Source of the DNA: Blastocladiella emersonii ATCC 22665
Lineage: Eukaryota; Fungi; Blastocladiomycota
Assembly: GCA_025594325.1 (NCBI GenBank)
Contig: JANHCV010000006.1
Location: forward strand, 868,001-932,000
Direction: 5' to 3'
DNA length: 64,000 bases
Shown here: piece by piece, positions 11,524 through 25,473 of the stretch
How the letters are laid out: every line of letters begins with the position of its first letter
Position numbering within the stretch: position 1 is the first letter of the stretch
The notes under the pieces: generated by a model
The model's input: only the letters and a program-made list of their open reading frames with translations
What the model was told of the DNA's origin: nothing
Database searches by the model: none
Program-made: the position numbers and the translations under genes

Positions 11524-13251
11524 CTACCCTCGCCTCGGTCGCATCCCAAACGTGGTCCGCAGCGCCTGGTTGAAGTGCCGGTCGAGCGTGAGCAGGATCA
11601 GCGGGTCGCACATCTCGCTCGCAAACTTGCTTACGACGAAGACTACACGCGCACGAATCGGTGTTGGTGGTCAGCACCACTCGCAAAACGCACAAGCGAG
11701 TCGCGTACACGTATCCACCGCAAGCGACGCCCGCCGGCCGTTGAGGAATCCCTCGAAGACTACACGAACGCGTCGGTTGTCAGCCACGCGGTCACGCACG
11801 CGCATACTCAACGACGACGTGATGTACGCACTGACGATGGTGAACGGGATCAGCGTGATGAGGAACCCGAGGAACGACAGGATCCCGCGCCGCAGGACGC
11901 GGAGCTCCGACTGCCGCTTCTGCTCCTCTTGCGTCGACCGCTTCTTTCGTCGCTGCGTCGGGAGCTTCACCGGCCGGACGAGCTGCGTCTGCGACTCGGG
12001 CTGCTGCGTCTCGCCGACTGGTGTCGGTGTCGGCGTCGGCGCAACGTTGCCCGGGAGCGGGAGCGCGCCCGCGCTGAACGCACGCTGCATAGGCGACGTG
12101 ATGGACAGCGTGACGTAAGTGTTGCCCGTGCCCGGATTGCTCGAGGTCGCCGAGAGGAACGGGTTAGAGGCCGCGCCCGGCCCTTGATCCTCGAGTGGGG
12201 TCGGCGATGGAAGCCTCCCTGAGCGGATCCTATATGGCGAATGAGGACGATGAGGCCACTCGAAACGAGGAAGCGAGGAGATGACGCGGGAAGCGCCTCG
12301 TACATGGCCAGGGACCCTGGAGGAAGCCGTGTAAGTGTGGATCCATGCATCACGCACGTCCGCAAGGGCGTACCGAGACTCTGCACCGAGAGGTTGTTGC
12401 GCTTCTCGATGCTCTCGTTGACGGCCGTCTCGAGCGACTGGATCGTGGCCGCGCCGAACTCGGGCGCGTTGCTCACCTTCTTCACGCTGCGGTACGAGTC
12501 GCGGATCTTGTACAGCACGCTCAGGTACCCGAACACGATGGCCACCATGTTCCCTGCAAGGAGCAGAAAGTCCAGAAGCCCGAGCCAGCTGTGGAAGGCT
12601 GTCGGGTAGCAAAATATTCTACGCGTGACAAACGGGTCAGCTTCCCGGTAATACACGATCCGTGCGATTGGTCGTACCCACTCTTGGTGATCACGCCGAT
12701 GCCGCCGTTGATCAGGTGCAACAGGCTATGGCCGACGGCGACCAACGCACACGCGCAGACCACGGTGTAAGCCTTGCGGCGCGAGACGTGGTACGACCTG
12801 ACCACGGACAGGTACCGCTCGCCGCTGATGCACACCATGACGAGCACCGACATGGTGACGAACACGACGTTGGTAGATGAAAACAGGGTACACATCTCCT
12901 TCGACCAGTGGTATTCGTGGACGAGCTTGACGCGCTCGGCCGCGATGGTCAGCCCGTAGAGTGCGTTGCTCAGGCTAGCGTGAGGAGAGCACGATTAGCG
13001 CGCGATGACTGGTCGCTCCAGTCTGGGAGTACAAACCATAGTCCGGCGAAGAGAATATTGGCGGCCGTGTCGAGGAGGTGCGGGTTCCTCGCCGCCAGTG
13101 CGACAACCAGCGTGTTCAGCGCGAAGACGAGGACGCTCTCGAAGATGACGACACCGTTGAACACCTTGGCTGTCTCGAGGTTGCTCAGCTCGAAGTTCCA
13201 TGGATCCCACTCCGACAGCTCCCAGCGAAGGAGCTCATCATGGTCGTTCAT
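11524..13251 (-). CDS. Rhodopsin-like (class A) GPCR, opsin-like candidate, copy 1
   Basis: Spliced product has 7 hydrophobic helices with N1.50 (ALNTLVV), LCLSN (2.50 as N), C3.25...GERY, ECL2 SGIFC, Y5.58 (VFGY), P6.50 (LIPF), TM7 VVSKFASEMCDPLI and helix 8 LDRHFNQAL; six introns. Confidence 0.8.
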
Positions 13252-13370
13252 TGCTATTTCGCCAAGTTGGGCGGTGCATTCGATCGCATCAAGGTTAAGT
13301 CTGGGAGCGCTGCGATCCCCAGGTGGTTCCCGAAAGCTTGGCTCGGCTGAGCGAACAACGCGTTTGAATA

Positions 13371-13420
13371 TCACGTGAGCGGTGCGAGACATGTCGTCGC
13401 GAGACATCGTTCGAGACACG
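13371..13420 (-). promoter_or_regulatory. Candidate GPCR1 promoter block: CACGTG E-box plus GTCTCGCACC and further GTCTCG repeats
   Basis: + strand tcacgtgagcggtgcgagac...gcgagac...cgagac, 120-170 bp upstream of the ATG at 13251; the same block lies upstream of the paralogue. Confidence 0.5.
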
Positions 13421-13589
13421 TCCCTAGGGACGCGCTCTTAGCTCGAACTCGTGCTGCGGACATTTGCACCCATGCGATTGCGATCAACCACCGTTTTCTT
13501 TTGAAGTGGGACACATGGAACGTGATCATTCTGGCGCCGATTCGCGGGGCGCGACTACAGGCGACCTGCTCCCATCCGTGTGACTGAGT

Positions 13590-14590
13590 CATCACGTGTA
13601 TCATGATCCTCGACATCGCGCCCACCTCGGCCACTGTTGAGCAGACGCTTTTGTGTCTCTACTACGCTAACCGCGTCAAGGAGCACTCGCACGGGACGGG
13701 CAACGGAGCGCCGGGGAGCGCCGACAAGCTCATTGCACAGCTCGCTGCGGCTGCGCCGTCTCCTGTGCAAGAAACGGCCGTTGCTGTCGGAGGCGAGCCC
13801 GTCTGGACCGAGTCGGCGAGTGAAAGCTCGGTCGAGGAGGACGAGGACCTGCCGGGCGCATCCGATGGCGATGAGGGCGACGGCGGCGAGTGCGCGGACG
13901 GACGAGGAGGACCCGGACTTGTCAGCCATGAGCCACCCGCAGATCGAGGGCGACGAGTTCGGGCACGAGTCCGAGGCGTCGATCCTCAACGCGTATGGTG
14001 ACGGTGACGGTGACGCTGCCGACGAGTCGGTCATGCAGCAGTCACAACAGCCGCAAAAAGACGAGGGCGAGTCGACGCCGCTTCCGATGCGCTCACAGCG
14101 GTACGCGTCGGCAGCGTCGAGCGAGTCGATGGTGATCAGCACGGTGGGTTCGGCCGAAACCGTGACGCCGCAGTCGTCCATGAGCACGCTGCGCCGCCTC
14201 GCCACGTCCGTGACCGCGGCCGCCGTCAAGTCGCTCCTCCCGTAGCCCATGGCGGCGCCGCCAGCCCAGACCGCCGCAAACTTCACGGACCAGGGCCTCA
14301 TGGAGCTGCACGTGCGCACGCTGCGCGCGGTGCTCGACCCGTCGAGAGAGTAGGAGGCGCTGGTCGACGACGCGGCGCGCGGCAAGGTGGCGGGCCCCGT
14401 GTACACCGAGGCGCTCGGGGTGCTCGTCGACGACAAGCTGCGGCGGCTGCTCAAGCTCAAGCTCAAGGCCATGGTCCAGGTCGTCCGCCAGCACCACACG
14501 CACAGCGACGTGCTCGACAGCCCGCCGCCGCCCGGCGGGACCGCGCGTGATCGGGTCCGCGCCATGCGGCGTGGGGCGGCGCCGTCATGA
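13590..14590 (+). pseudogene. Kinesin-13-like 3' gene fragment, pseudogenised
   Basis: TCIMILDIAPTSATVEQTLLCLYYANRVKE resembles the end of a kinesin-13 motor; the rest of the motor is absent (in-frame TGA just upstream); 4-bp GGAC duplication at ~13896-13903 shifts frame; in-frame TAGs at 14243 and 14348 precede a helical tail ELHVRTLRAV...DDKLRRLLKLK. Confidence 0.65.
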
Positions 14591-14792
14591 GATTGGTGGT
14601 GGCACAGACTGATCATTCATTCGATTCATGATGTGTGGGCGTGATGGTGTGAGGGAAAGAGTGCGAGCGAGCAGCGAGCCGGGTCAGGTGGGCGGCCTTG
14701 GCTGGGCTCTGGGGACTTGGAACACCACAACCACTTGCTCGCCGGCCTCCACGCCTCTCCCAGCCCACACTCGCCGATGTAACGAATGAATC

Positions 14793-16631
14793 ATGGACTT
14801 GATGCAACGCAAGCTTGATGTGGACGAGATTATCGAGGCGATTCTCGTCCGCGCCGTCCTGCTGCACGGCAACCGCGACGAGGACGTCGCTGGCGTGCTC
14901 CCGTACTTGCGCGTCCTGCCGCGATCCCGCGCTCCAAACGTTTCGCGCACGGTTCTGCGCCGCTTTCCGAGTCTCTCACTCGAAGCTGCCACGTGCGACG
15001 GGAATGTCAAGCTGTTGCGCCTGTGGCACGAGTTAAACTGGTTGACGCTCTCCATCGATGGCGAATGGGTTCGGGGGGCCATGCTCGAGGGGCACGAGGA
15101 CGTGCTTGCGTTCTGGCGCGAAAATGTTGCGTTCGTTGCCAAGTCGCACCTTGTGGACTTTTATTTCCGCGTCACACTCGATCTCCACGAGCCCGCACCA
15201 GCACCTGGCGTAGGACCAGGTGACGCAACACTCGCGCGAATGTCCAACGACATTGCTACAGGCCGGTGCCACGAAGTCAAAGTCAAGAACCGTCGCGTAA
15301 CTGCCGCTGGCCTTGACGAGCTCTCACGCGCGTTCGCCTCGCCAGCTCAGCGCGTCGAGTCGGTCTCTCTCGTTTGCTGTGATATTATTACTGCCAACTT
15401 GCTCCATCTGCGGCTTCCTGCCTCCGTCACGACGCTCAACTTGGCTCACAACCGGATCCTCGACCTTGCTCAGCCCTTGCCATGCATGCACGCTTCTCTG
15501 ACCGAGCTGTCGCTGGCTCGCTGCAACATGAACACCCTTGCCCTCACCAATTTGGCGCAGATGCTTCCCCACTCGCTTACCAGTCTCGATATCAGTGGCA
15601 ACGAGGTGAATCACGCTTCGGCCGAGGCGCTGAGCGCCGCTTTCCCGCCACAGCTTCGGCGCCTGTCAATGGCACGTTGCGCCTCCAACGGCGCGCTGCA
15701 GCCCGTCCTCGAACGTCTGCCCACCACGCTGGTCGACCTCAATTTATCGTTCAATACCCTGAACGATGTCAACGTGCGAACATTTGTGCACCGCTTGTCT
15801 TTGCTCAACGACCTCACCCGTCTTGTCTTCGAGTGCTGCTTCATGTCAGCGGACTTGCGAGCGACGGTGATCACAGCGCTTCCGGACTCGGTCGAGGTCC
15901 TGAAGATGTCCGCAGCCAGGGCAAGTCGAGCGGTCGTGGCAGCACTCGTGGATCGCCGACTACCGCACCTCAAGGTTTTGGGTGTAACGGAACTTCGCAG
16001 CAACGATGAGGCAGCATTGATAAATGCGCTCCCAGCTTCGCTTCTTGATCTCCATGTGAATACTGCGTCGCGTGATCTCTCCCAACTTCCAGCTGCGCTC
16101 GGTCAGCTGTTTGCGCGCGCTTCAGGGCTTCGTTCCCTCCGGCTCTTTAGTCGCTCCATGGCAAACCTCAATCTGCTCGAGTTTGTCGACACGCTTCCGC
16201 CCAGCATTGCGCGCTTCGCGCTTGACCACTGCCAGCTTGGACTCGATGTGATCCCGCGGCTACTCGCCCGCCTCCACGCGCCGACCGTGACGCACCTCAA
16301 GCTCCCGTTACTCAGTCTCACTGGACACGCTCTTGACGCGCTCCTCGTATGGCTGCGCGACGCCTCGTCGCTGGTCGAGCTAGGTGTCCAGCGAACCGGG
16401 CTCGTCAACGAGACCTTTGCGCTCCTCGTGGCCGCACTTCCCGACTCGCTCCAGACATTCGAGTTCTCTTTCAATGCGTTGGATGACACGATCATTGACA
16501 TGATCGAGGCCCGCGCGCTGCCCAACCTGTCCTCCATGCTGTACCACCGCACGGCTCTGTCATCCGAGGGGCTCAAGCGAATGCGGATCATGGAATTTGG
16601 GTATTGGAACAGCAATGGTGAATATACGTAA
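14793..16631 (+). CDS. Intronless protein with two ankyrin-like repeats and about 15 RNI-like leucine-rich repeats (612 aa)
   Basis: AATCDGNVKLLRLW and GAMLEGHEDVLAFW repeats; LPxSLTxLDLSxN-type repeats of ~28 aa; visibly lower GC and more T-ending codons than neighbouring genes. Confidence 0.8.
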   Translation: MDLMQRKLDVDEIIEAILVRAVLLHGNRDEDVAGVLPYLRVLPRSRAPNVSRTVLRRFPSLSLEAATCDGNVKLLRLWHELNWLTLSIDGEWVRGAMLEGHEDVLAFWRENVAFVAKSHLVDFYFRVTLDLHEPAPAPGVGPGDATLARMSNDIATGRCHEVKVKNRRVTAAGLDELSRAFASPAQRVESVSLVCCDIITANLLHLRLPASVTTLNLAHNRILDLAQPLPCMHASLTELSLARCNMNTLALTNLAQMLPHSLTSLDISGNEVNHASAEALSAAFPPQLRRLSMARCASNGALQPVLERLPTTLVDLNLSFNTLNDVNVRTFVHRLSLLNDLTRLVFECCFMSADLRATVITALPDSVEVLKMSAARASRAVVAALVDRRLPHLKVLGVTELRSNDEAALINALPASLLDLHVNTASRDLSQLPAALGQLFARASGLRSLRLFSRSMANLNLLEFVDTLPPSIARFALDHCQLGLDVIPRLLARLHAPTVTHLKLPLLSLTGHALDALLVWLRDASSLVELGVQRTGLVNETFALLVAALPDSLQTFEFSFNALDDTIIDMIEARALPNLSSMLYHRTALSSEGLKRMRIMEFGYWNSNGEYT

Positions 16632-16726
16632 CCACGAGCTTTTCAAGCTAAACCAGTATCACAGTGTTGAGGCAGCTTCTAGTTCACAATCATGTACTGT
16701 ATCATCAAAATTGATCGAGAAGGTGA

Positions 16727-18444
16727 TCACGGCTGCTTGAGCCCCACGGCTCGCCTCAACGCGCGGTTGAAGTGTCGGTCGAGCGTGAGCAGGATGATCG
16801 CGTCGCACATCTCGGAGAGAAGCTTGATCACGACCGAGACTACGCGGTCGGCGGCGGAACCGTCGTCAGTGGCCGCAGCGTCGGTGGCCGCGCTTAGCTC
16901 ACGGGAGAAGTAAACTGACGCACATGTGTCCAGCTCGAGCGAGATGCGCTTGCCGTAGAAGAACCCATCGATGACTACGGACGGAGACGGTCAGTCACAC
17001 GCGGTCGCTCGTCGGAACCTGCCGCCTGCGTACTCATCGCGCCGAACGGCACCAACGTGAACCACGACGCGAGGAACGAGAGCATGCCGCGGCGCAGCAC
17101 GCGGATCTCGGTCCTCCGCTTCTGCTCGGCCTGGACCGATCGCACCTTGCGGATCGGCCGCTTTTTCAGGCCCGACGACGCTTGAGGATCGGGAAACTGT
17201 GGCAGGAGGTCCGTGGTCGGGCTCATCGGGCTCATCGGGCTCATCGGCAGCGCGCTCATGCTCGGTGTCGTCGGGCTGTTGGAGAGGAGGCTCGCGCTGG
17301 ACGCGCGGGGCAGGAGAATGGAGGGAGCCGCGAGGGTAGGGTTGCTGCCGTGCGCGGACGCGGTGCCCGTCGTAGCAGAAGTCTCGTGGTCAGTCGTGGT
17401 CGGCGAGACTGAGACTCGACCGAGTCGGACCCTAGACACGGTCGTTCCGTTAGTCGCCGCATGAGGGTTACGCGGAAGGAGAGCGAGATAGCAACGATGC
17501 GAGAATGCCTACACGCCGATGGCAGGGTTAGTTCGGGGGCTGCGAGTAGAATCAGCGACAGAGGCGTACCGTGGCCGGTGTTGGGCGAGCTCCGCTTCTC
17601 GGCGCTCTCGTTGGCGGCGGTTTCGAGCGACTGCATCGTCGCGGCGCCGAACTGCGGCACATTGGTGATCCGCTTGACGCTCTTGTACGACTCCTGGATC
17701 TTGGCGAGGACGCTGAGGTAGCCAAACGCGATGGCCGATGTGTTCCCGAGCAGCAGGATCAAGTCGACGAGGCCGACGATAGAGTAGACCTGCGATGGAT
17801 AGCAGAAAATGCTACACACGCGGGTGTGAACTAGTGCTCGTACTGACGCGGTATCACGGAACCGTACCCGCTCCGACTGATCATCCCGACCCCGCCGCCG
17901 ATCGTGTGGATCAAACTGTGCCCGACACCCATGACGGCGCTCGAGACGACCATGGCGTACGACTTTTGGCGCGAGATGTATATTCCGCGGACCACGGTCA
18001 GGTACCGCTCGGCGCTGATGAACAAGATCAGCACAATCGAGGTCACGACAAAGGCGACGTTGGTCATGGCGAACAGGGTGCACATGGTCCGCGTCCACAG
18101 GTACTCGAAAATGAGCTTGATGCGTTCCGCTGCGATGGCGGCGCCGTAGAGCGCATTGTTGAGGCTACCCGCCGCGCTAGGTGGTCAGCTCGAGGAAGAC
18201 GAGCAACAGAGAGCTATACAGCCACGAACCAGAGTGCAACAAAGAGAATGTTGGCCGCCGTGTCGCGCAGGTGCGGGTCGCGGGCCGCGAGCGCGACGAC
18301 CGTTCCGTTGAGCAGCAGCACGACCAGGCTCTCGGCGATGATGATGCCATTGTAGACCTTGGCGGTCGCGAGATTCTCGGTCTGCCAGTTCCATGGGTCC
18401 CAGTCGAGCACCTCCCATTGCCGGAGCTCGCCTCCGTAGTTCAT
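16727..18444 (-). CDS. Rhodopsin-like (class A) GPCR, opsin-like candidate, copy 2
   Basis: Paralogue of 11524-13251 with the same intron positions: WDPWN N-terminus, LLNGTVV, LCLNN, MCTLF...SAERY, SGIFCYP, AFGY, LVPF, TM7 VVIKLLSEMCDAII, LDRHFNRAL. Confidence 0.8.
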
Positions 18445-18582: not shown

Positions 18583-18620
18583 TCACGTGCAAGGTGTGAG
18601 ACGTGCGAGACGCGTCGGAC
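18583..18620 (-). promoter_or_regulatory. Candidate GPCR2 promoter block: CACGTG plus GTCTCACACC and GTCTCGCAC
   Basis: + strand tcacgtgcaaggtgtgagacgtgcgagac, ~140-175 bp upstream of the ATG at 18444. Confidence 0.5.
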
Positions 18621-18712: not shown

Positions 18713-21700
18713 CTATTCACACACCGACTCGACCTCGACCCCTCTCCGCGCCGCCACGGACGGCGCCGCCGCACTCAGCATCCCCGCCCCCGCGATCGCC
18801 TTGAACTGCGCGACGGGCACGGTGCCCTGGAAGTCCTCGACGACGAGCTCAGACACGTCGCCGATAACGACGGCCCCGGTACCCGCCACGTCCTCGTCGT
18901 CGTCGTCGTGATCCGCCGCCTCCTCGGCGAGCACGGGCAGCATCATCGAGTGGTCGCCGACCGCGTCGACGCCCGCGGACCCGAACAGCATGCCGGCGCC
19001 GCCCCACAGGGACTCGTCGCCGATCACGACCATGCTGGCGTCGGCCGCGTGGCCGTGTACTGGCGCGGGCGCAGGAGCGGCAGCGGGTGGTGCAGGCGGC
19101 TCGGGCGCGGCGACAGGTTCTGGCTCGTCAGCGTCAACGTCGACGTCGCCGAGCTTGAGGATCCGGTCCTCGTCGTCGGCGAGCACGATCTGGTCGAGCA
19201 TCGTGTTGTTCCCGTCGTCGAACTCAAAGTAGTCGAACATGGCCGAGTCGTCGGCGATGCCCGCCCCGGGACTGTGCACGGGCGGCGCGAGGAACGCGGA
19301 CTCGGCCGTGATGGGGACGGACAGCTTGGCGGAGGAGGAGGAGGTCGGCGGCGCCGAGTCGGCCGCGGCAGCGGGCGCCGCGGTCCCGAGGATCCGCGCG
19401 GCGGCCGTCGTGGTCACGGCGCGGATCTCCTCGCGGTGCGCAGCCGCCTCGACGGGGTCGAGCGGCGCGTTGATGGCGGCGTCGACAGCTGAGTTGGGGA
19501 GGGTTTTCGCGGCGGCGGTTGGTGGTTTTGGCAGCTCGGCGGCATCGACAGTGGACGCAGAGGGCGCTGTCTGCGCGGCCATGGACGACGCCATAGCGCG
19601 GCGGCGGAGACTGCCGTTCGCACCACTATTCGCGCCGGCGGATACCGCAGCCAGCCGCACCGAGAGCGCGCCGGCGGACGCGGCGTTGAACGACCGGCGC
19701 TTCGCCGCGACGGCATCCTCGCCCGCCGCGGTCGCCGCCGCCGTGGTGGGATCCGCGAGGAACCCGATGGTGCGGACCTCGGGCGACTCGGGGACGAGCT
19801 CGAGCTCCGTGAGGTGAAGCGACTCGGTGGCCCATGCGGCGCGGTCGAGGCCGACCATGGACGTCATGCCCTCCTCGTGCGGCGGCTCCGCTTCGGGTTC
19901 AGGTGCAACTTCTTCCGGGTCGCCGTAGTACCCGCCCGTGGCGATCGGCGGGCCCATGACGTCGTCGTCGTTGGCGTCAAAGTCGCTGCTCGCGTCGGAC
20001 GCCGCGTCGTCGCAGTCGTCGATGGTAGCGGGCGTCTCCTCAAACGCGGGGACGGGCGGGAACTCGATAGCGACGACGGGTGCAGGCGCGGGTGCGACGC
20101 TGGCGGGCCGCGATGGCGGCTGTTTGCGCGACGGCGTGTTCTCGTCGGGCATATCGTCGAGGAACCCGAAATCGGCCGTGTGCCCTTGCCCGTGGTGGTG
20201 CAGGGCGCCGGCGGGTGGGGTGATGGGGACGGGCGGTGGCGGCGCGTCAATGACCGCGGTACGCGCGGGAGCGTCGGCGAGAGTGGGGACCGCCGAGGGT
20301 GCGCGTGGATGGGGGAGCGGGGACGGCGAGAAGGTGCCGCCGCCGCTGGCGGTGGAGACGCGGCGCAGATCGAGTGCGGCGGGCGCGATGGCGGGCGAGA
20401 GCGGGGTGCCCGAGAAGGACCGGTTGTTCCGCGACGTCGAGTGCGACGACATGGACGCGACCGAGACGGTGGGCGAGGCTGGGAGCGGCGGGAGCGAGGC
20501 GGCCGAGGGCGGCGGGTCGCGCGCGTCGAGCTCGAGTTGCAGCTCGAGCAGGCGTTTTGTGAGGAGCACGTTCTACACAAATGGACGGGGTTAGCGTCGA
20601 GCGGTGGTTGCGGCGGGGATGCGGGAACGGACCTGGTTGATAAGGTTCAGGTGGTCCTTAGCGATGCCCGTCTCGTACTGGAGCACCTTGAGCTGCAGCT
20701 CGAGGTTCTGGTTGCGCAGCGCTTCCACATCCTACACATTCGGCCACGCAAGTCAGTCACTCATTCCCGCAACGAGCACAATCGTGAGCCGTACCACAGG
20801 CTGCTGCATAACCTGCGCAGCAATCCGTGCGGCCGTCGAGAGGTAGCTATTGAGCGCCTCCTTGGCCATCGCCATGGACGGCGTGATGGTGTGCCCGGAC
20901 GCAGGCGACGCGAGCGAGACTGAGGGCGCGCGGGACGTGCGGTTGGACCCGAACGACGACGACGAGGTCGAGTTTCGGAGGACCGGCGTGGTCCCGTTCA
21001 CGGACGCCGTGGACGACGCCGTCGAGAGCCGGCGCATGCGGGACGCCGCCGGCGTCGGGCTATCCGGCGTCAACGCAGCCGGCGCCGGTGCGGGCGACGA
21101 CGGCTGTTGTGGAGGCGGCGGGGTCGGCGCGCCGTCAGTCCACGCCTGCGCGGGCGAGCGCTGCGTCGGGACGGGCGCGGCGCCGCGGTACCGCTGCATG
21201 TCGGGCGTGGTCGCCACGGGCGACGGGGTGGGCGCGGGGCGCGACGCTTCGCCGACGGTGGCACGGCGCGCGGGCGGCGTCACGCGCGGCGGGGCTGCTG
21301 CGCGTTCGGAACCTGAGGTCGAGGAGACGGAGCTGTGGCGCGAAGCGCGCATGCCGAGCTGCGACGACGACGCGAGGGTCGCGGTGCCGTTCGTGGCCGC
21401 GGTCGTCGGGTGCGGCAGCGTCGAACCGCGACGCAGAGCGCCAGCACGCGCGGCGAGGAGCGACGACGACGCCGCACTCGTACTCCCATTTGGCGCAGGC
21501 ACGGCCGAGACGGGCGCGGGCGACGCGGAGAAGGCCATGCGGAGGTTCGGGACCGAGGCCGAGTTGGCGAGCGTCGACGCGGTGGTCGACGACCGGTAGC
21601 CCGAGACGGCGGGCGGCGCGTGCGCATGGGCGTGCGCGTTGACCGAGCCGCGCGCGCTCGACAGGTGGTTTCCGTCCTCAGACGCGGGCGCCGGCGGGTG

Positions 21701-22555
21701 CGAGTGCGAGTGGTGCTGGCGCGCGGAGCCATAGCGCGGCTGGTCCGAGGCGGTGCTCATGACGGACCCGCGGCGCGAGGCGGGGGGTACGCTGGCGCCG
21801 GGGCCGCGGAGCAGCGAGGACGTGGACGCGGCCATGGACGAGGGGCCGGCGAGGCGCGAGGGTGGCGGGATACCAGCGGCTGATGGCGGGTGGATGGCCG
21901 AGGGCGGGCGGATCGATGGGCCGACGCCGTTGCCGACAGGGCGCATCCCCGGTTGAGTCGCCTGCGGGTGCGCGAGGCCAGTAGCCGACGACGACGATGA
22001 GTGGGGCGGGGCAATCATGGAGCGCGCCATGCGGTTGCTGCCCACGGGGTGCGCGGCCGGCCCACTGCCGTTGGCAGCGATGCCCGAGAGGGAAGGTCGG
22101 GCGAGCGACCCGCCACTGCCGCTGCCGGTCCCGCTACTGCTGGCGGCGCTTCCCACGCTGCTGCTGCCGGAGCGGCGCGAGGGCAGCGAGGGCGCGGCCG
22201 AGGGCGCGACGGACGGCGTGGCGGCGTAGGGCGGGATCTCGATGAGCGGGCCGAGACTGAGGTCCGGGTCCGTGGTGTTGATGGCGCTCGCGTTGCGGCC
22301 GGCCGCCGTGGTGCCCGTGGCCGTCGAGTCGGCGGTCGTGGTGCTCGCCGCATCGTCAAAGGCAGCGCCGGTTTCCGCAGGCCGGTGGTGCGGGTACGGG
22401 TATGCGGGCTGGGTGCTCGGCACACGCCGCACGGGCGCAGCAGCCGGTCCCGCGGCCGTGAAGGGCGAGGCGGACCGCGGCAGGCGCGCCGGCGACGGGT
22501 TCTTGAGCGGGCCGCGCGGCGGCAGGCCCGAGGGTGCATCGTTTCGGCTTAGCAT
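18713..22555 (-). CDS. Large low-complexity Ser/Pro/Ala-rich protein with a short central coiled coil and acidic C-terminus, function unknown
   Basis: Two long open frames (20.8-22.55 kb and 18.7-20.57 kb) joined through a small exon DVEALRNQNLELQLKVLQYETGIAKDHLNLINQ; genome-typical codon usage. Confidence 0.7.
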
Positions 22556-22826: not shown

Positions 22827-23000
22827 CACGTGGAGCTGCGACGACGCGTCTTGTCTCGCGTCTCGTCTCCTGTCTCGCACCACTCGCCTTTTGTCGCCCG
22901 CTCACCGCTCGTTGCTCCGGTCAATCGAGAAGACTCTAATTTTCGACACCCGTTGTGTCCGTGTGTCGCCCTCGTCAACCGGCCGCGTCTCGCACCTTGC
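22827..23000 (+). promoter_or_regulatory. Candidate 7TM-gene promoter block: CACGTG (22827) and GTCTCGCACC twice (22872, 22987)
   Basis: Same motifs as in the GPCR promoters, on the sense strand of the 7TM gene starting at 23239. Confidence 0.45.
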
Positions 23001-23238
23001 CTGCTTCATGCCTTGTTCGCGCGCTGGTCGCTGATCCGCGCGGCCTTGGCCTTCGGATCACGGCCGTGTGGACCAGTACCCCCGTTGCACACGCGAGCGC
23101 CGAGCATGGAGCGCGGAACACATACGCGGGGTTTCCATCCGCCCGGGCCCGAGGCGCTCTCTCCTCGGCCTCCGCGGAATCTCGATCACTGACCATCACC
23201 GCGGCCACCGATCACTCCCCTGGCCACCGACCACCACC

Positions 23239-24405
23239 ATGGCCTTGACCGAGGTATACCCACCTTCCGATAGCCACCATGACCACATACTCACCCGCTC
23301 ACCCGTATAGAGCTCTTTCTCGTGGAACGGCGGCTCCTTCTACCTGGGCGTGATCCTGACGCTGCACCTCAACACGATCGCCTCAGCGTTCGAGCGGTGC
23401 CGGGACCGTTTTTCGCCGTACTTTGCCGCCATCATCGTGCTCGCCGTCTCGCACATCATCACGCTCGTCATCATCGTGGCCTATGGCGGCCAGAACGACC
23501 CGACGCAGCCAGAGGGCAAGGTCGCGCCGCTGACGGCCGGTCTCAACGCGCTTGCGATTCTGCTCGAGCATGTCACTGAGGTTGGGTTCGTGTCGCTCAA
23601 TTTTTTCCGGTACGGTTCTCTGGGTGATCGGCGTCGTGGCGGGAGCTGGCGCGTCTCCGCCTGGTCATCACGATATCAACTGACGCCCATGGCCACGACC
23701 ACGTCCAATACGCTGAGTAGGCTCAAGAAGCTCGCGCAGGTCAAGTACCCGCTGCCGATCCGGATCATGACCATTCTCGTGTTCCTGTACATGCTCGGGG
23801 TCACCATCCACAACATCTGGTTCCTCGTGTTGCTGTCGCGCAACGACTCGCTCATCACCATGGCCGGGCCCGCCAGCATGTTCAACCGTACGCCCTTTCC
23901 CCCGTGTCCTCCCCTCACCCTTACGCTAACCCTCACACTCACCCTAGTCATGTCCTTCTACGACGGCCTGCTGAACGCGGGCATCTCGCTGGGCTTCGTG
24001 CTATACCTGCGCAGCGTGACGCTCGACCCGCAGTTCGCGCGGTCCCGCTCGAGCCTGAGCTCGATGCTGGCGTCCGTCAAGTACTCGCTGGGCTTCGAAT
24101 GCGCGGTCATCATCGCCGCAAACCTGCTGCAGCTCGTCTCGCCCGCGTCCGACCCGCTGTGGATCGCCACCTACCTCTCGCTCGCGCTCCGCCTGCGCAT
24201 CTTCACCTCGTTCCTGAGCACGCTCGGCGTCATGCTGCGCCAGACCAACCGCAGTGATGGCGGGAGCAGTATCACGGGCGGTGCAGCAGGGGCAAACGCG
24301 GCGGGCACGTCGAACAGCGCGCTCTCGCAGATCCCGCTGCAAGCGGGCGGTGGGGGTACGCTCGTTGGCTCCCCGGCGGGGATCTCGCGGACGGGCAAGG
24401 AGTAG
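23239..24405 (+). CDS. Seven-transmembrane (GPCR-like) membrane protein
   Basis: ACCACCATG start, 15-nt first exon MALTE, three introns; seven hydrophobic segments and a Gly/Ser-rich cytoplasmic tail; no DRY or NPxxY motif. Confidence 0.7.
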
Positions 24406-24509
24406 CGGTGGTGGAGTCGACGTGTGAAGTGTGGAGCAACAAGAAAGAAAATTCAACATTACGTAGCACCGAGTGTGGGGTAGAAACAGCTTGAGCGGAG
24501 CGCCGTCGC

Positions 24510-24873
24510 TTACTCCTCGTCGTCAGCGGCCTTGGGCGCCGTCTTGGTCCAGGGGTCGCGCTTCGCGAGCATGCCCTACAGAACGCTCGACCGGCGTCAG
24601 GACCTCGTTCGGTCCAACCGGAACCCCAAAAGCAGTACCTGGCCGGCCACCGACAACTGGTACATGGCAAAGGGGATAGCAACGAGGCAGATGGCGCCGA
24701 TGCGCAGGGTGCGGGCGTTGATGCGGAAGTGCGCGTCCGTGGTCTCGCGCATGTGCGCCCACGCCTCGATGGCGGGGTCGTGCTTGACGGCTAGTTTGGG
24801 GGGGACCCCTCTCTCAGTTCCATCGTCCATGCGCGCTCGATACATTGCACGAACCGTTCTTTCCGGCGGCCAT
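24510..24873 (-). CDS. NDUFB4: NADH:ubiquinone oxidoreductase NDUFB4 (B15)-like subunit
   Basis: MAAGKN|AVKHDPAIEAWAHMRETTDAHFRINARTLRIGAICLVAIPF: DPA motif, F-R-x-x-x-R and one TM helix; two introns. Confidence 0.8.
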
Positions 24874-24985
24874 GGTGTTGATACGTTGCAGCTAGTGGTT
24901 GCTCGTGGGGACTCGTTACGATCGTTCTCGAGCGGCAAGAGCGCCTCAACAGGCGGAACGGGCGATCATGTGAGCTCCATCGACC

Positions 24986-25473
24986 ATGCGCCGCGAGAAA
25001 ATCTGCAGTACACGCTGGTACCGCCCTTGCGACTCGGTGCAACGTCGCCGCGACGCCTGACATCGCGCCGTGGTAGGGAGAAGGTGTGGGTGACGCGCGA
25101 CGGCGCGCCGTTCCCGGTCCTCAAGTGGGTCAAGAGTGCGTGCCGCGCGAGCGCGATTCCCACTGGCGACCATGGACTGACAATCCCCAAACTAGGCGAC
25201 GTGCCGCTCCCGGAGGTCGACGACACTGACGACCTCGAGGTTCCGAGCGAGTCCGTGGACCCGTCCTCGAGCGCGGTCGAGCCTGAGCCTGAGAGTAAGC
25301 CCGCGGAGGAGCCCGTGGCCATGGAGGTGGACGGCGAGGGCGTCGCGGATGGCGAGGTCGACGCCGATGGCGCCAAGGACACGGACTCGACGTTCATGGC
25401 GGCGCACGACACGGCCATGTACGACCAGGAGCACGAGCTGGACGTGGACGCGCCTGCCGCGCCCACCGAGTAA
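24986..25473 (+). CDS. BCL7/BDH-like small SWI/SNF-associated protein
   Basis: Exons 24986-25017, 25077-25135, 25196-25473 give MRREKICSTRWEKVWVTRDGAPFPVLKWVK plus an acidic tail; compare BCL7 [22 protein letters not shown]. Confidence 0.6.

Follow-up and report, generated by a model that had tools for sequence, protein, structure and literature searches.

A helix-7 lysine–glutamate pair in a fungus-only clade of class-A receptors, with two paralogous members in Blastocladiella emersonii

We analyzed a window of 64,000 nucleotides from the genome of Blastocladiella emersonii ATCC 22665 (assembly GCA_025594325.1, contig JANHCV010000006.1, positions 868,001 to 932,000 of the forward strand), and in particular two genes in it, which we call g1 and g2. 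Both encode class-A (rhodopsin-family) G-protein-coupled receptors (GPCRs). Sequence comparison places the pair in a radiation confined to Blastocladiomycota and, within that radiation, in a clade of 15 full-length receptors and 3 fragments with a Lys at position 7.42 and an acidic residue, nearly always Glu, at position 7.46 of transmembrane helix 7 (TM7). Our preferred reading, to which we assign a probability of roughly 0.7, is that g1 and g2 are functional, diverged paralogs that act as orphan ligand-activated receptors with a buried K7.42–E7.46 pair, and that they are not photoreceptors. An earlier proposal made from the letters of the window (the original prediction) had presented the two genes as candidate animal-type (type II) opsins. 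Membership in the animal opsins is not supported by our comparisons.

Opsins are regarded as having originated in animals. In an organism that makes retinal and that is a model for optogenetics, a class-A clade restricted to fungi whose helix 7 has an invariant Lys–Glu pair, predicted to be buried, is of interest. If retinal binding were true, this interest would be high; otherwise it is moderate. Even as chemoreceptors, these proteins would have an unusual class-A activation core, with a charged pair and without D2.50, W6.48 and Y7.53, and the Lys-bearing clade would constitute a defined set of candidate zoospore chemoreceptors. The genes have previously been annotated as hypothetical and their family has been counted; the literature that we searched has no description of the K7.42/E7.46 signature and no mention of K7.42 or E7.46 in any GPCR.

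Both genes encode class-A receptors

The gene and motif coordinates on which this section draws are as follows.

16727..18444, minus strand: g1, class-A GPCR gene of 7 exons encoding 442 amino acids (spliced model)
11524..13251, minus strand: g2, class-A GPCR gene H9P43_005604 (protein P0001), 425 amino acids as annotated and 445 with a micro-exon
18002..18010, minus strand: E-R-Y motif of g1
12812..12820, minus strand: E-R-Y motif of g2 (3.49-3.51)

The annotated product of g2, hypothetical protein H9P43_005604 (P0001, which equals g2 minus the micro-exon), matches the Pfam profile 7tm_1 (PF00001) with a score of 80.8 bits, where the gathering cut-off is 30.5 (E=1.4e-22). The aligned region, residues 46-402, extends over positions 2-259 of the 260 in the profile. 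Taken alone, the exon 2 piece of either gene matches 7tm_1 too, with E=3.8e-7 for that of g1. AlphaFold models of both proteins have seven helices, a hairpin in extracellular loop 2 (ECL2) and a helix 8, which lies at 408-417 in g2. The g2 model has a predicted local distance difference test score (pLDDT) of 83.4 and a predicted template modelling score of 0.77; the pLDDT of the g1 model is 79.9.

In P0001 numbering, the class-A landmarks are N46 (1.50), C100 (3.25), E124-R125-Y126, C174 (ECL2), Y202 (5.58) and P365 (6.50). In our alignment of the full-length subfamily members (A2), E124 and R125 are invariant, as are the two cysteines C100 and C174 of the C3.25–ECL2 pair. The set of residues on the G-protein side is intact, namely E/R/Y, E6.30, Y5.58 and helix 8, and coupling of g1 and g2 to a G protein is putative on the basis of the conserved ERY, E6.30 and Y5.58. 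The original prediction had described g1 and g2 as paralogous class-A GPCRs with the landmarks N1.50, C3.25, ERY, the ECL2 Cys, Y5.58, P6.50 and helix 8. All these landmarks are present, and the Pfam match, the fold models and the 50% identity between the two proteins bear the description out.

Several microswitches are atypical. Position 2.50 is N, 7.49 is D, 6.48 is L (with P6.50 kept), and the end of helix 7 reads D-P-x-x-L in g2 and D-A-x-x-L in g1. D2.50, CWxP and NPxxY are thus all lacking; such motifs are typical of class A, but they are not obligatory. The Ala at 7.50 of g1 also occurs in one Catenaria ortholog. The third intracellular loop is long, disordered and rich in Ser, Thr and Pro. 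An N-terminal segment, E-L-x-x-W-E...W-D-P-x-N-F, is conserved; in the model it has a pLDDT above 90 and is packed on the extracellular face.

An invariant lysine and its acidic partner in helix 7

The original prediction had located a TM7 Lys in each gene, with a Glu four residues later (KxxxE in both copies). In the spliced models, the Lys codons are at the positions that it gave, and the Glu is confirmed at K+4 in both proteins:

16823..16825, minus strand: Lys codon AAG of g1, position 7.42, in the invariant alignment column K392
11626..11628, minus strand: Lys codon AAG of g2, position 7.42, K392 of P0001
16811..16813, minus strand: Glu codon of g1 at K+4, position 7.46 (read from the sequence)
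11614..11616, minus strand: Glu codon of g2 at K+4, E396, position 7.46

K392 is invariant among the full-length members (15/15 in alignment A2), whose identities range from 20 to 54%, and because of this invariance at such divergence, the alignment indicates that retention of the Lys is not a matter of chance. Position 7.46 is E in 14 of these sequences and D in the other one. D7.49 (D399), I7.52 (I402) and D407 of helix 8 are invariant as well, and the K...E motif recurs in the 3 Catenaria fragments. The helix-7 signature of the clade can be written [ST]-K-[FL]-x-x-E-x-x-D-P. Conservation of the Lys in relatives had been named in advance as a check, and its result is clear: the Lys is invariant and its acidic partner nearly so, a sign that both are strongly constrained.

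Residues K392, E396, D399 and L403 are spaced i, +4, +7 and +11, and so lie on a single helical face. In class-A receptors, the helix-7 face with 7.46, 7.49 and 7.53 points into the bundle. Because K392 shares this face, we predict that it is buried and not lipid-facing, and that the Lys and Glu together lie on a core-facing stripe of helix 7. AlphaFold modeling, which the original prediction had also suggested, helped in part: both models show the class-A fold, and in both, helix 7 breaks precisely at the Lys and the residue that follows it (392-393 in g2 and 406-407 in the g1 fragment). The strict co-occurrence of K and E is compatible with a Glu that serves as a counterion, and equally with a simple buried salt bridge.

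A radiation found only in Blastocladiomycota

When 1.84 billion representative proteins were searched exhaustively with phmmer (E<=0.001), just 58 relatives were found. The close matches whose source we looked up all come from B. emersonii, B. britannica or Catenaria anguillulae, and the first animal match looked up is an echinoderm adrenergic-like receptor at approximately 1e-9. Word-index protein searches with an exon-bearing open reading frame (ORF) and with P0001 returned solely P0001 itself.

The tree contains a fungus-only radiation with a Shimodaira–Hasegawa-like approximate likelihood ratio test (SH-aLRT) support of 99. Here g1 and g2 are mutual closest relatives (100), and one receptor of B. 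britannica and two of Catenaria join them in a group (97). All 15 Lys-bearing rows fall in one clade, whose sister clade is Lys-less. A further Lys-less group is nested within the Lys-bearing clade, so one gain and one loss of the Lys suffice to explain its distribution; in this nested group, 7.46 has drifted and is now G, A, N, D or K. In subfamilies of Blastocladiomycota that are more distant, 7.42 is I, L, M or F and 7.46 is P, V, T or G. Because K and E are both present in one clade and both absent in its sister, they appear to have been gained or lost together.

Throughout the radiation, 2.50 is N, Y or H while 7.49 is D, and E7.46 is therefore not a simple compensation for a lost D2.50. 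From the alignments, the K/E pair is specific to the Lys-bearing clade, where its addition coincides with loss of W6.48.

B. emersonii has at least 9 paralogs, mostly in one or more tandem clusters (H9P43_003914 to 003931). Its genome is reported to contain 54 PF00001 genes in 8 orthogroups, tandem duplicates included (PMC9730499). Among the Lys-bearing paralogs, column entropy exceeds 2 bits at 3.28, 3.36, 3.37, 5.42, 6.48, 6.51, 6.52 and 7.39. Tandem expansion together with a variable pocket fits the pattern of a diversifying chemoreceptor family.

Three further observations concern this radiation. The Lys-less sister clade (P0013-P0016, P0019 and P0024; H9P43_004235, 004264, 004268, 004470 and 004471 of B. 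emersonii and BC828DRAFT_284773 of B. britannica) has Asp at 3.28, which is the position of the E113 counterion of rhodopsin, W or F at 6.48, and no P6.50. One annotated protein, P0003 (H9P43_003931, 761 amino acids), contains two complete receptors of the Lys-bearing clade, both of which keep K...E...DP; it represents a tandem fusion or, alternatively, two genes that the annotation has merged. Finally, most members of the radiation (alignment A1), with or without the Lys, conserve R/K at 2.61, D at 5.43 and D/E at 7.35 in the extracellular half, which suggests a common polar framework at the pocket entrance.

Comparison with opsins

Animal opsins (bovine, squid and jumping-spider rhodopsin and a TMT opsin) resemble g1 and g2 in their seven-helix fold, N-terminal cap, ECL2 hairpin and helix 8 (Z 25.7-27.5), and in E-R-Y, the C3.25–ECL2 disulfide cysteines and a conserved Lys in the middle of helix 7. 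However, the Lys of opsins is at 7.43 and not 7.42, their counterion is at 3.28 or in ECL2, and they have W6.48 and NPxxY where g1 and g2 have L and DPxxL or DAxxL. Moreover, g1 and g2 differ from opsins in the N at 2.50 and in an unconserved pocket, and they have no phylogenetic tie to the opsin tested.

The register of the Lys was established with an alignment to TMT opsin b (P0061) that is anchored at 7.50. For helix 7 we used MAFFT --add, since an hhalign comparison of A2 with this opsin covered TM1 to ECL2 only. The opsin Lys is 7 residues before the P and the fungal Lys 8 before it, so that the fungal Lys stands opposite an Ala of P0061, one column before the Schiff-base Lys. An alignment with the dopamine D2 receptor gives the same register, with K against G7.42 and E against S7.46. 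By sequence register, then, the Lys is not at the Schiff-base position 7.43.

The canonical counterion sites are likewise empty, with Phe at 3.28, and Thr in g2 and Ser in g1 at the E181 site, which lies 6 residues ahead of the ECL2 Cys and is Glu in P0061. The original prediction had itself listed as caveats the Lys 8 residues before 7.50, the Phe at 3.28, the Thr or Ser at the E181 site and the Leu at 6.48, and each is correct. In the would-be retinal pocket of the subfamily, 6.48 is L, V, S, T, I or A, and 3.36, 3.37, 5.42, 6.51 and 6.52 vary. Such variability is unlike that of a family with one common chromophore.

When the A2 profile was compared with solved structures, the list was headed by the octopamine beta2 receptor, at 1.5e-11, and the D2 receptor, at 4.5e-11, and cone opsins ranked 9 and 14 (2e-8 and 3e-8). 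A match of the A1 profile to beta-1 adrenergic receptors (E=1e-53) was discarded because A1 held animal aminergic-like rows. Aminergic receptors (octopamine beta2, 9m55; dopamine D2, 8tzq; histamine H4) are thus the best sequence and profile matches among solved structures. They share with g1 and g2 a long third intracellular loop and a polar 3.32, which is N in g1 and g2 but D in aminergic receptors. The resemblance has limits: E-values are no better than 1e-9 to 1e-11, D3.32, W6.48 and Y7.43 are missing from g1 and g2, and aminergic receptors have Gly at 7.42 and Ser at 7.46 in place of Lys and Glu.

In a tree with P0061 as the single opsin, the opsin lies beside animal aminergic-like receptors, separated from the fungal radiation by a branch with 100% SH-aLRT support. 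Forcing the Lys-bearing clade and this one opsin sequence together costs 86.9 log-likelihood units and is rejected by the approximately unbiased (AU) test (p-AU 2e-13). Because of this rejection, the Lys seems to have arisen inside the fungus-specific radiation. A phylogeny with animal opsins and chytrid rhodopsin-like GPCRs had been proposed as a check of the opsin hypothesis, and the Lys-bearing clade groups neither with the one opsin included nor with the fungal "opsin-like" group. Given the 7.42 register, the empty counterion sites, the missing W6.48 and the AU result, the original assignment as candidate type II opsins is not supported.

Chytrid "opsin-like" GPCRs are also class-A receptors of zoosporic fungi, and have been discussed as possible type II opsins. 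The fungal "opsin-like" group, with "Opsin-5" of Allomyces (P0041, AMAG_11340) and H9P43_009365 of B. emersonii (P0040), is separate from g1 and g2 and lies on the canonical side, with D2.50, W6.48 and NP. Its Allomyces and Blastocladiella members have no TM7 Lys, in agreement with a study in which the Spizellomyces punctatus protein alone is stated to have the Lys (Ahrendt et al. 2017, PMC5410147). A survey of rhodopsin-family GPCRs in Holomycota found none with the opsin lysine; Blastocladiella and Catenaria were outside its sampling (PMC12716839).

Searches by fold proved uninformative on this question. VIA returned more than 50 class-A entries with Z of 25.3-27.8, and we abandoned Foldseek, VIA and Atlas as opsin discriminators, since their scores are flat across class A and opsins are not separable.

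An unlikely alternative: photoreceptors of independent origin

Although g1 and g2 do not belong with animal opsins, they could be retinylidene photoreceptors that acquired a Schiff-base Lys independently of animals. Under this hypothesis, K7.42 would bind retinal or another aldehyde and E7.46 would be its counterion. The Lys is invariant, predicted to be buried, one residue from 7.43 and always accompanied by an acidic residue, and the break of helix 7 at K-F/L in both models might represent a bulge, with a structural register displaced by one residue. A capped, hydrophobic pocket is present in the g1/g2 orthogroup. In addition, B. emersonii has genes for carotenoid synthesis and a carotenoid dioxygenase, and its zoospores use retinal (PMC4046227). 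A relocated Lys is tolerated by engineered rhodopsins, according to Devine et al. (2013) as cited in PMC3879442.

However, the Lys is at 7.42 relative both to a real opsin and to aminergic receptors, there is no E or D at 3.28 or the E181 site, W6.48 is absent, and the residues of the would-be chromophore pocket differ among the Lys-bearing paralogs. The clade is nested in a fungus-only radiation with Lys-less sister clades, and grouping with the opsin was rejected. E7.46 would lie on the cytoplasmic side of the Lys, by the Na+-site region, an unproven location for a counterion. Furthermore, phototaxis of the zoospores is already accounted for by BeGC1, a type I rhodopsin–guanylyl cyclase (PMC4046227). 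We therefore regard retinal or aldehyde binding as improbable. It is just as doubtful that the Lys-bearing clade, with g1, g2 and no fewer than 13 relatives, represents a separate second origin of G-protein-coupled photoreceptors that bind retinal or an aldehyde.

BeGC1, the known phototaxis receptor of the same organism, is itself a retinal protein with a helix-7 Lys (PMC4046227). It differs from g1 and g2 in having a microbial-rhodopsin fold that is fused to a cyclase and no G-protein coupling, and it has no sequence kinship with them. The charged pair at i and i+4 in helix 7 recalls the D-x-x-x-K found in microbial rhodopsins, with the charges swapped.

Proposed function of the Lys–Glu pair

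In the ligand-activated reading that we prefer, the K7.42–E7.46 ion pair would be buried in the floor of the ligand pocket, immediately above the canonical Na+/D2.50 site. It may anchor a small and mostly hydrophobic ligand by its polar head, or it may be an activation switch that replaces W6.48 and the Na+ site. The pocket would be capped by the conserved N-terminal W-D-P motif and the ECL2 hairpin. Ligand binding would then be relayed to a heterotrimeric G protein via the intact ERY, E6.30 and Y5.58, and the signal would probably serve zoospore chemosensing. The pocket of the g1/g2 orthogroup, with F3.28, N3.32, V3.33, V/I3.36, an aromatic residue at 6.51 and V7.39, is conservatively hydrophobic. 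A role for the Lys as a ligand site, to which the original prediction had turned as its alternative, is plausible.

Several points weigh against the ligand-activated reading. Y7.53 and W6.48 are both missing in g1 and g2, so activation may deviate from the canonical scheme. A hydrophobic, lidded pocket with a single deep Lys would be expected equally of a retinal-binding protein. Finally, the Z of 27.5 that VIA gives for jumping-spider and squid rhodopsin is close to its best value of 27.8.

The main rival other than the photoreceptor hypotheses is that the pair is purely structural. With its tethered cation and anion, it would replace the Na+/D2.50 site and steady the helix-7 kink, and the activator would never contact the Lys; activation could come from a built-in N-terminal ligand, from a loop-bound peptide, or be constitutive. 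The change of D2.50 to N, Y or H across the radiation, with D at 7.49, is in keeping with this proposal, and the i/i+4 spacing on one helix face favors an intrahelical salt bridge. The conserved N-terminal segment, modeled with high confidence on the extracellular face, would suit a built-in ligand, and the drift of 7.46 in the nested clade without Lys would suit a paired function. However, sister clades with N2.50/D7.49 do without K or E, and the pair is therefore not needed to offset the loss of D2.50. In several class-A receptors, the residue at 7.42 is part of the lining at the bottom of the orthosteric pocket (e.g., S277 of the adenosine A2A receptor and C7.42 of muscarinic receptors), and given this location, contact with a ligand is at least as likely. 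Overall, we consider a purely structural role unlikely, although less so than retinal binding.

The exchange of N2.50 and D7.49 has a parallel in gonadotropin-releasing hormone (GnRH) receptors, which have this exchange but no K7.42/E7.46. The likeness of the Blastocladiomycota radiation to the GnRH receptor type does not extend to kinship beyond this motif.

Gene models and integrity of g1 and g2

Six-frame reading and splice-site models place g1 between an ATG at 18444 and a stop at 16727, and g2 between an ATG at 13251 and a stop at 11524. The exons and upstream elements are as follows.

18444-18230, 18164-17868, 17811-17570, 17508-17496, 17431-17034, 16974-16924 and 16839-16727, minus strand: exons of g1
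13251-13037, 12974-12678, 12618-12374, (12316-12304), 12229-11832, 11759-11709 and 11642-11524, minus strand: exons of g2, with the candidate micro-exon in parentheses
17496..17508, minus strand: 13-nt micro-exon of g1 in intracellular loop 3, predicted and present in the NCBI model
12304..12316, minus strand: candidate 13-nt micro-exon of g2 in the homologous place, with phases that match g1; absent from the NCBI model
18583..18602, minus strand: promoter-like block GTCTCRCACC...CACGTGAT, approximately 150 nt 5' of the g1 ATG
13371..13390, minus strand: promoter-like block GTCTCRCACC...CACGTGAT, approximately 130 nt 5' of the g2 ATG

Both reading frames are unbroken over 7 exons, and all introns are GT-AG and 56-84 nt long. 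The original prediction stated that g1 and g2 share six intron positions. If both genes use the 13-nt micro-exon, there are indeed six introns with the same phases (2,2,1,2,1,1) in both; the NCBI model of g2, by contrast, has five introns, with one 196-nt intron in place of the micro-exon region, and is 20 residues shorter than the six-intron model. An alternative splice model of loop 3 with introns of 40-41 nt was dropped, as the micro-exon model fits the NCBI version of g1 and equalizes the phases. For intron 1 of g1, another AG 12 nt upstream of the acceptor (18165-18179, minus strand) would add 4 residues in TM2; since neither g2 nor the family alignment has such an insertion, we favor the acceptor at 18165/18164.

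In the NCBI annotation, g1 is part of a 1657-residue protein, P0002 (16727-22555, minus strand), in which residues 1221-1657 are identical to g1 residues 6-442. This model fuses a disordered ORF at 18713-22555 to g1 and omits the first 5 residues of g1. We judge P0002 to be an annotation merge of two separate genes, because g1 has its own Met start at 18444, the N-terminus that begins there can be aligned with g2 and the other family members, the upstream ORF is terminated by an in-frame stop at 18713-18715, and g1 and g2 share the promoter-like block 130-150 nt before the ATG. A second common block, CGAATGCA, lies approximately 30 nt 5' of both ATGs.

It is conceivable that one or both genes are functionless, decaying duplicates in which the Lys is kept by descent only, and the Ala in place of Pro at 7.50 of g1 might be taken as a sign of this. 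However, the same Ala occurs in a Catenaria ortholog, the frames are intact with canonical splice sites, and every family-invariant residue is kept in both proteins. Pairwise dN/dS between g1 and g2 is 0.33-0.50 in alignable blocks, and the upstream block is conserved before both genes. Decay is thus very improbable, the least likely of the explanations considered here.

The decamer GTCTCRCACC recurs on the plus strand at 22872 and 22987; near these copies, tblastn with the family and Pfam searches of the ORFs at 22955-25470 found no receptor gene of the family. Between g1 and g2, the plus strand has an intronless ORF (14793-16631) of 612 amino acids with leucine-rich repeats (Pfam LRR_6, E=5.9e-7), a region that NCBI instead annotates as two short minus-strand models.

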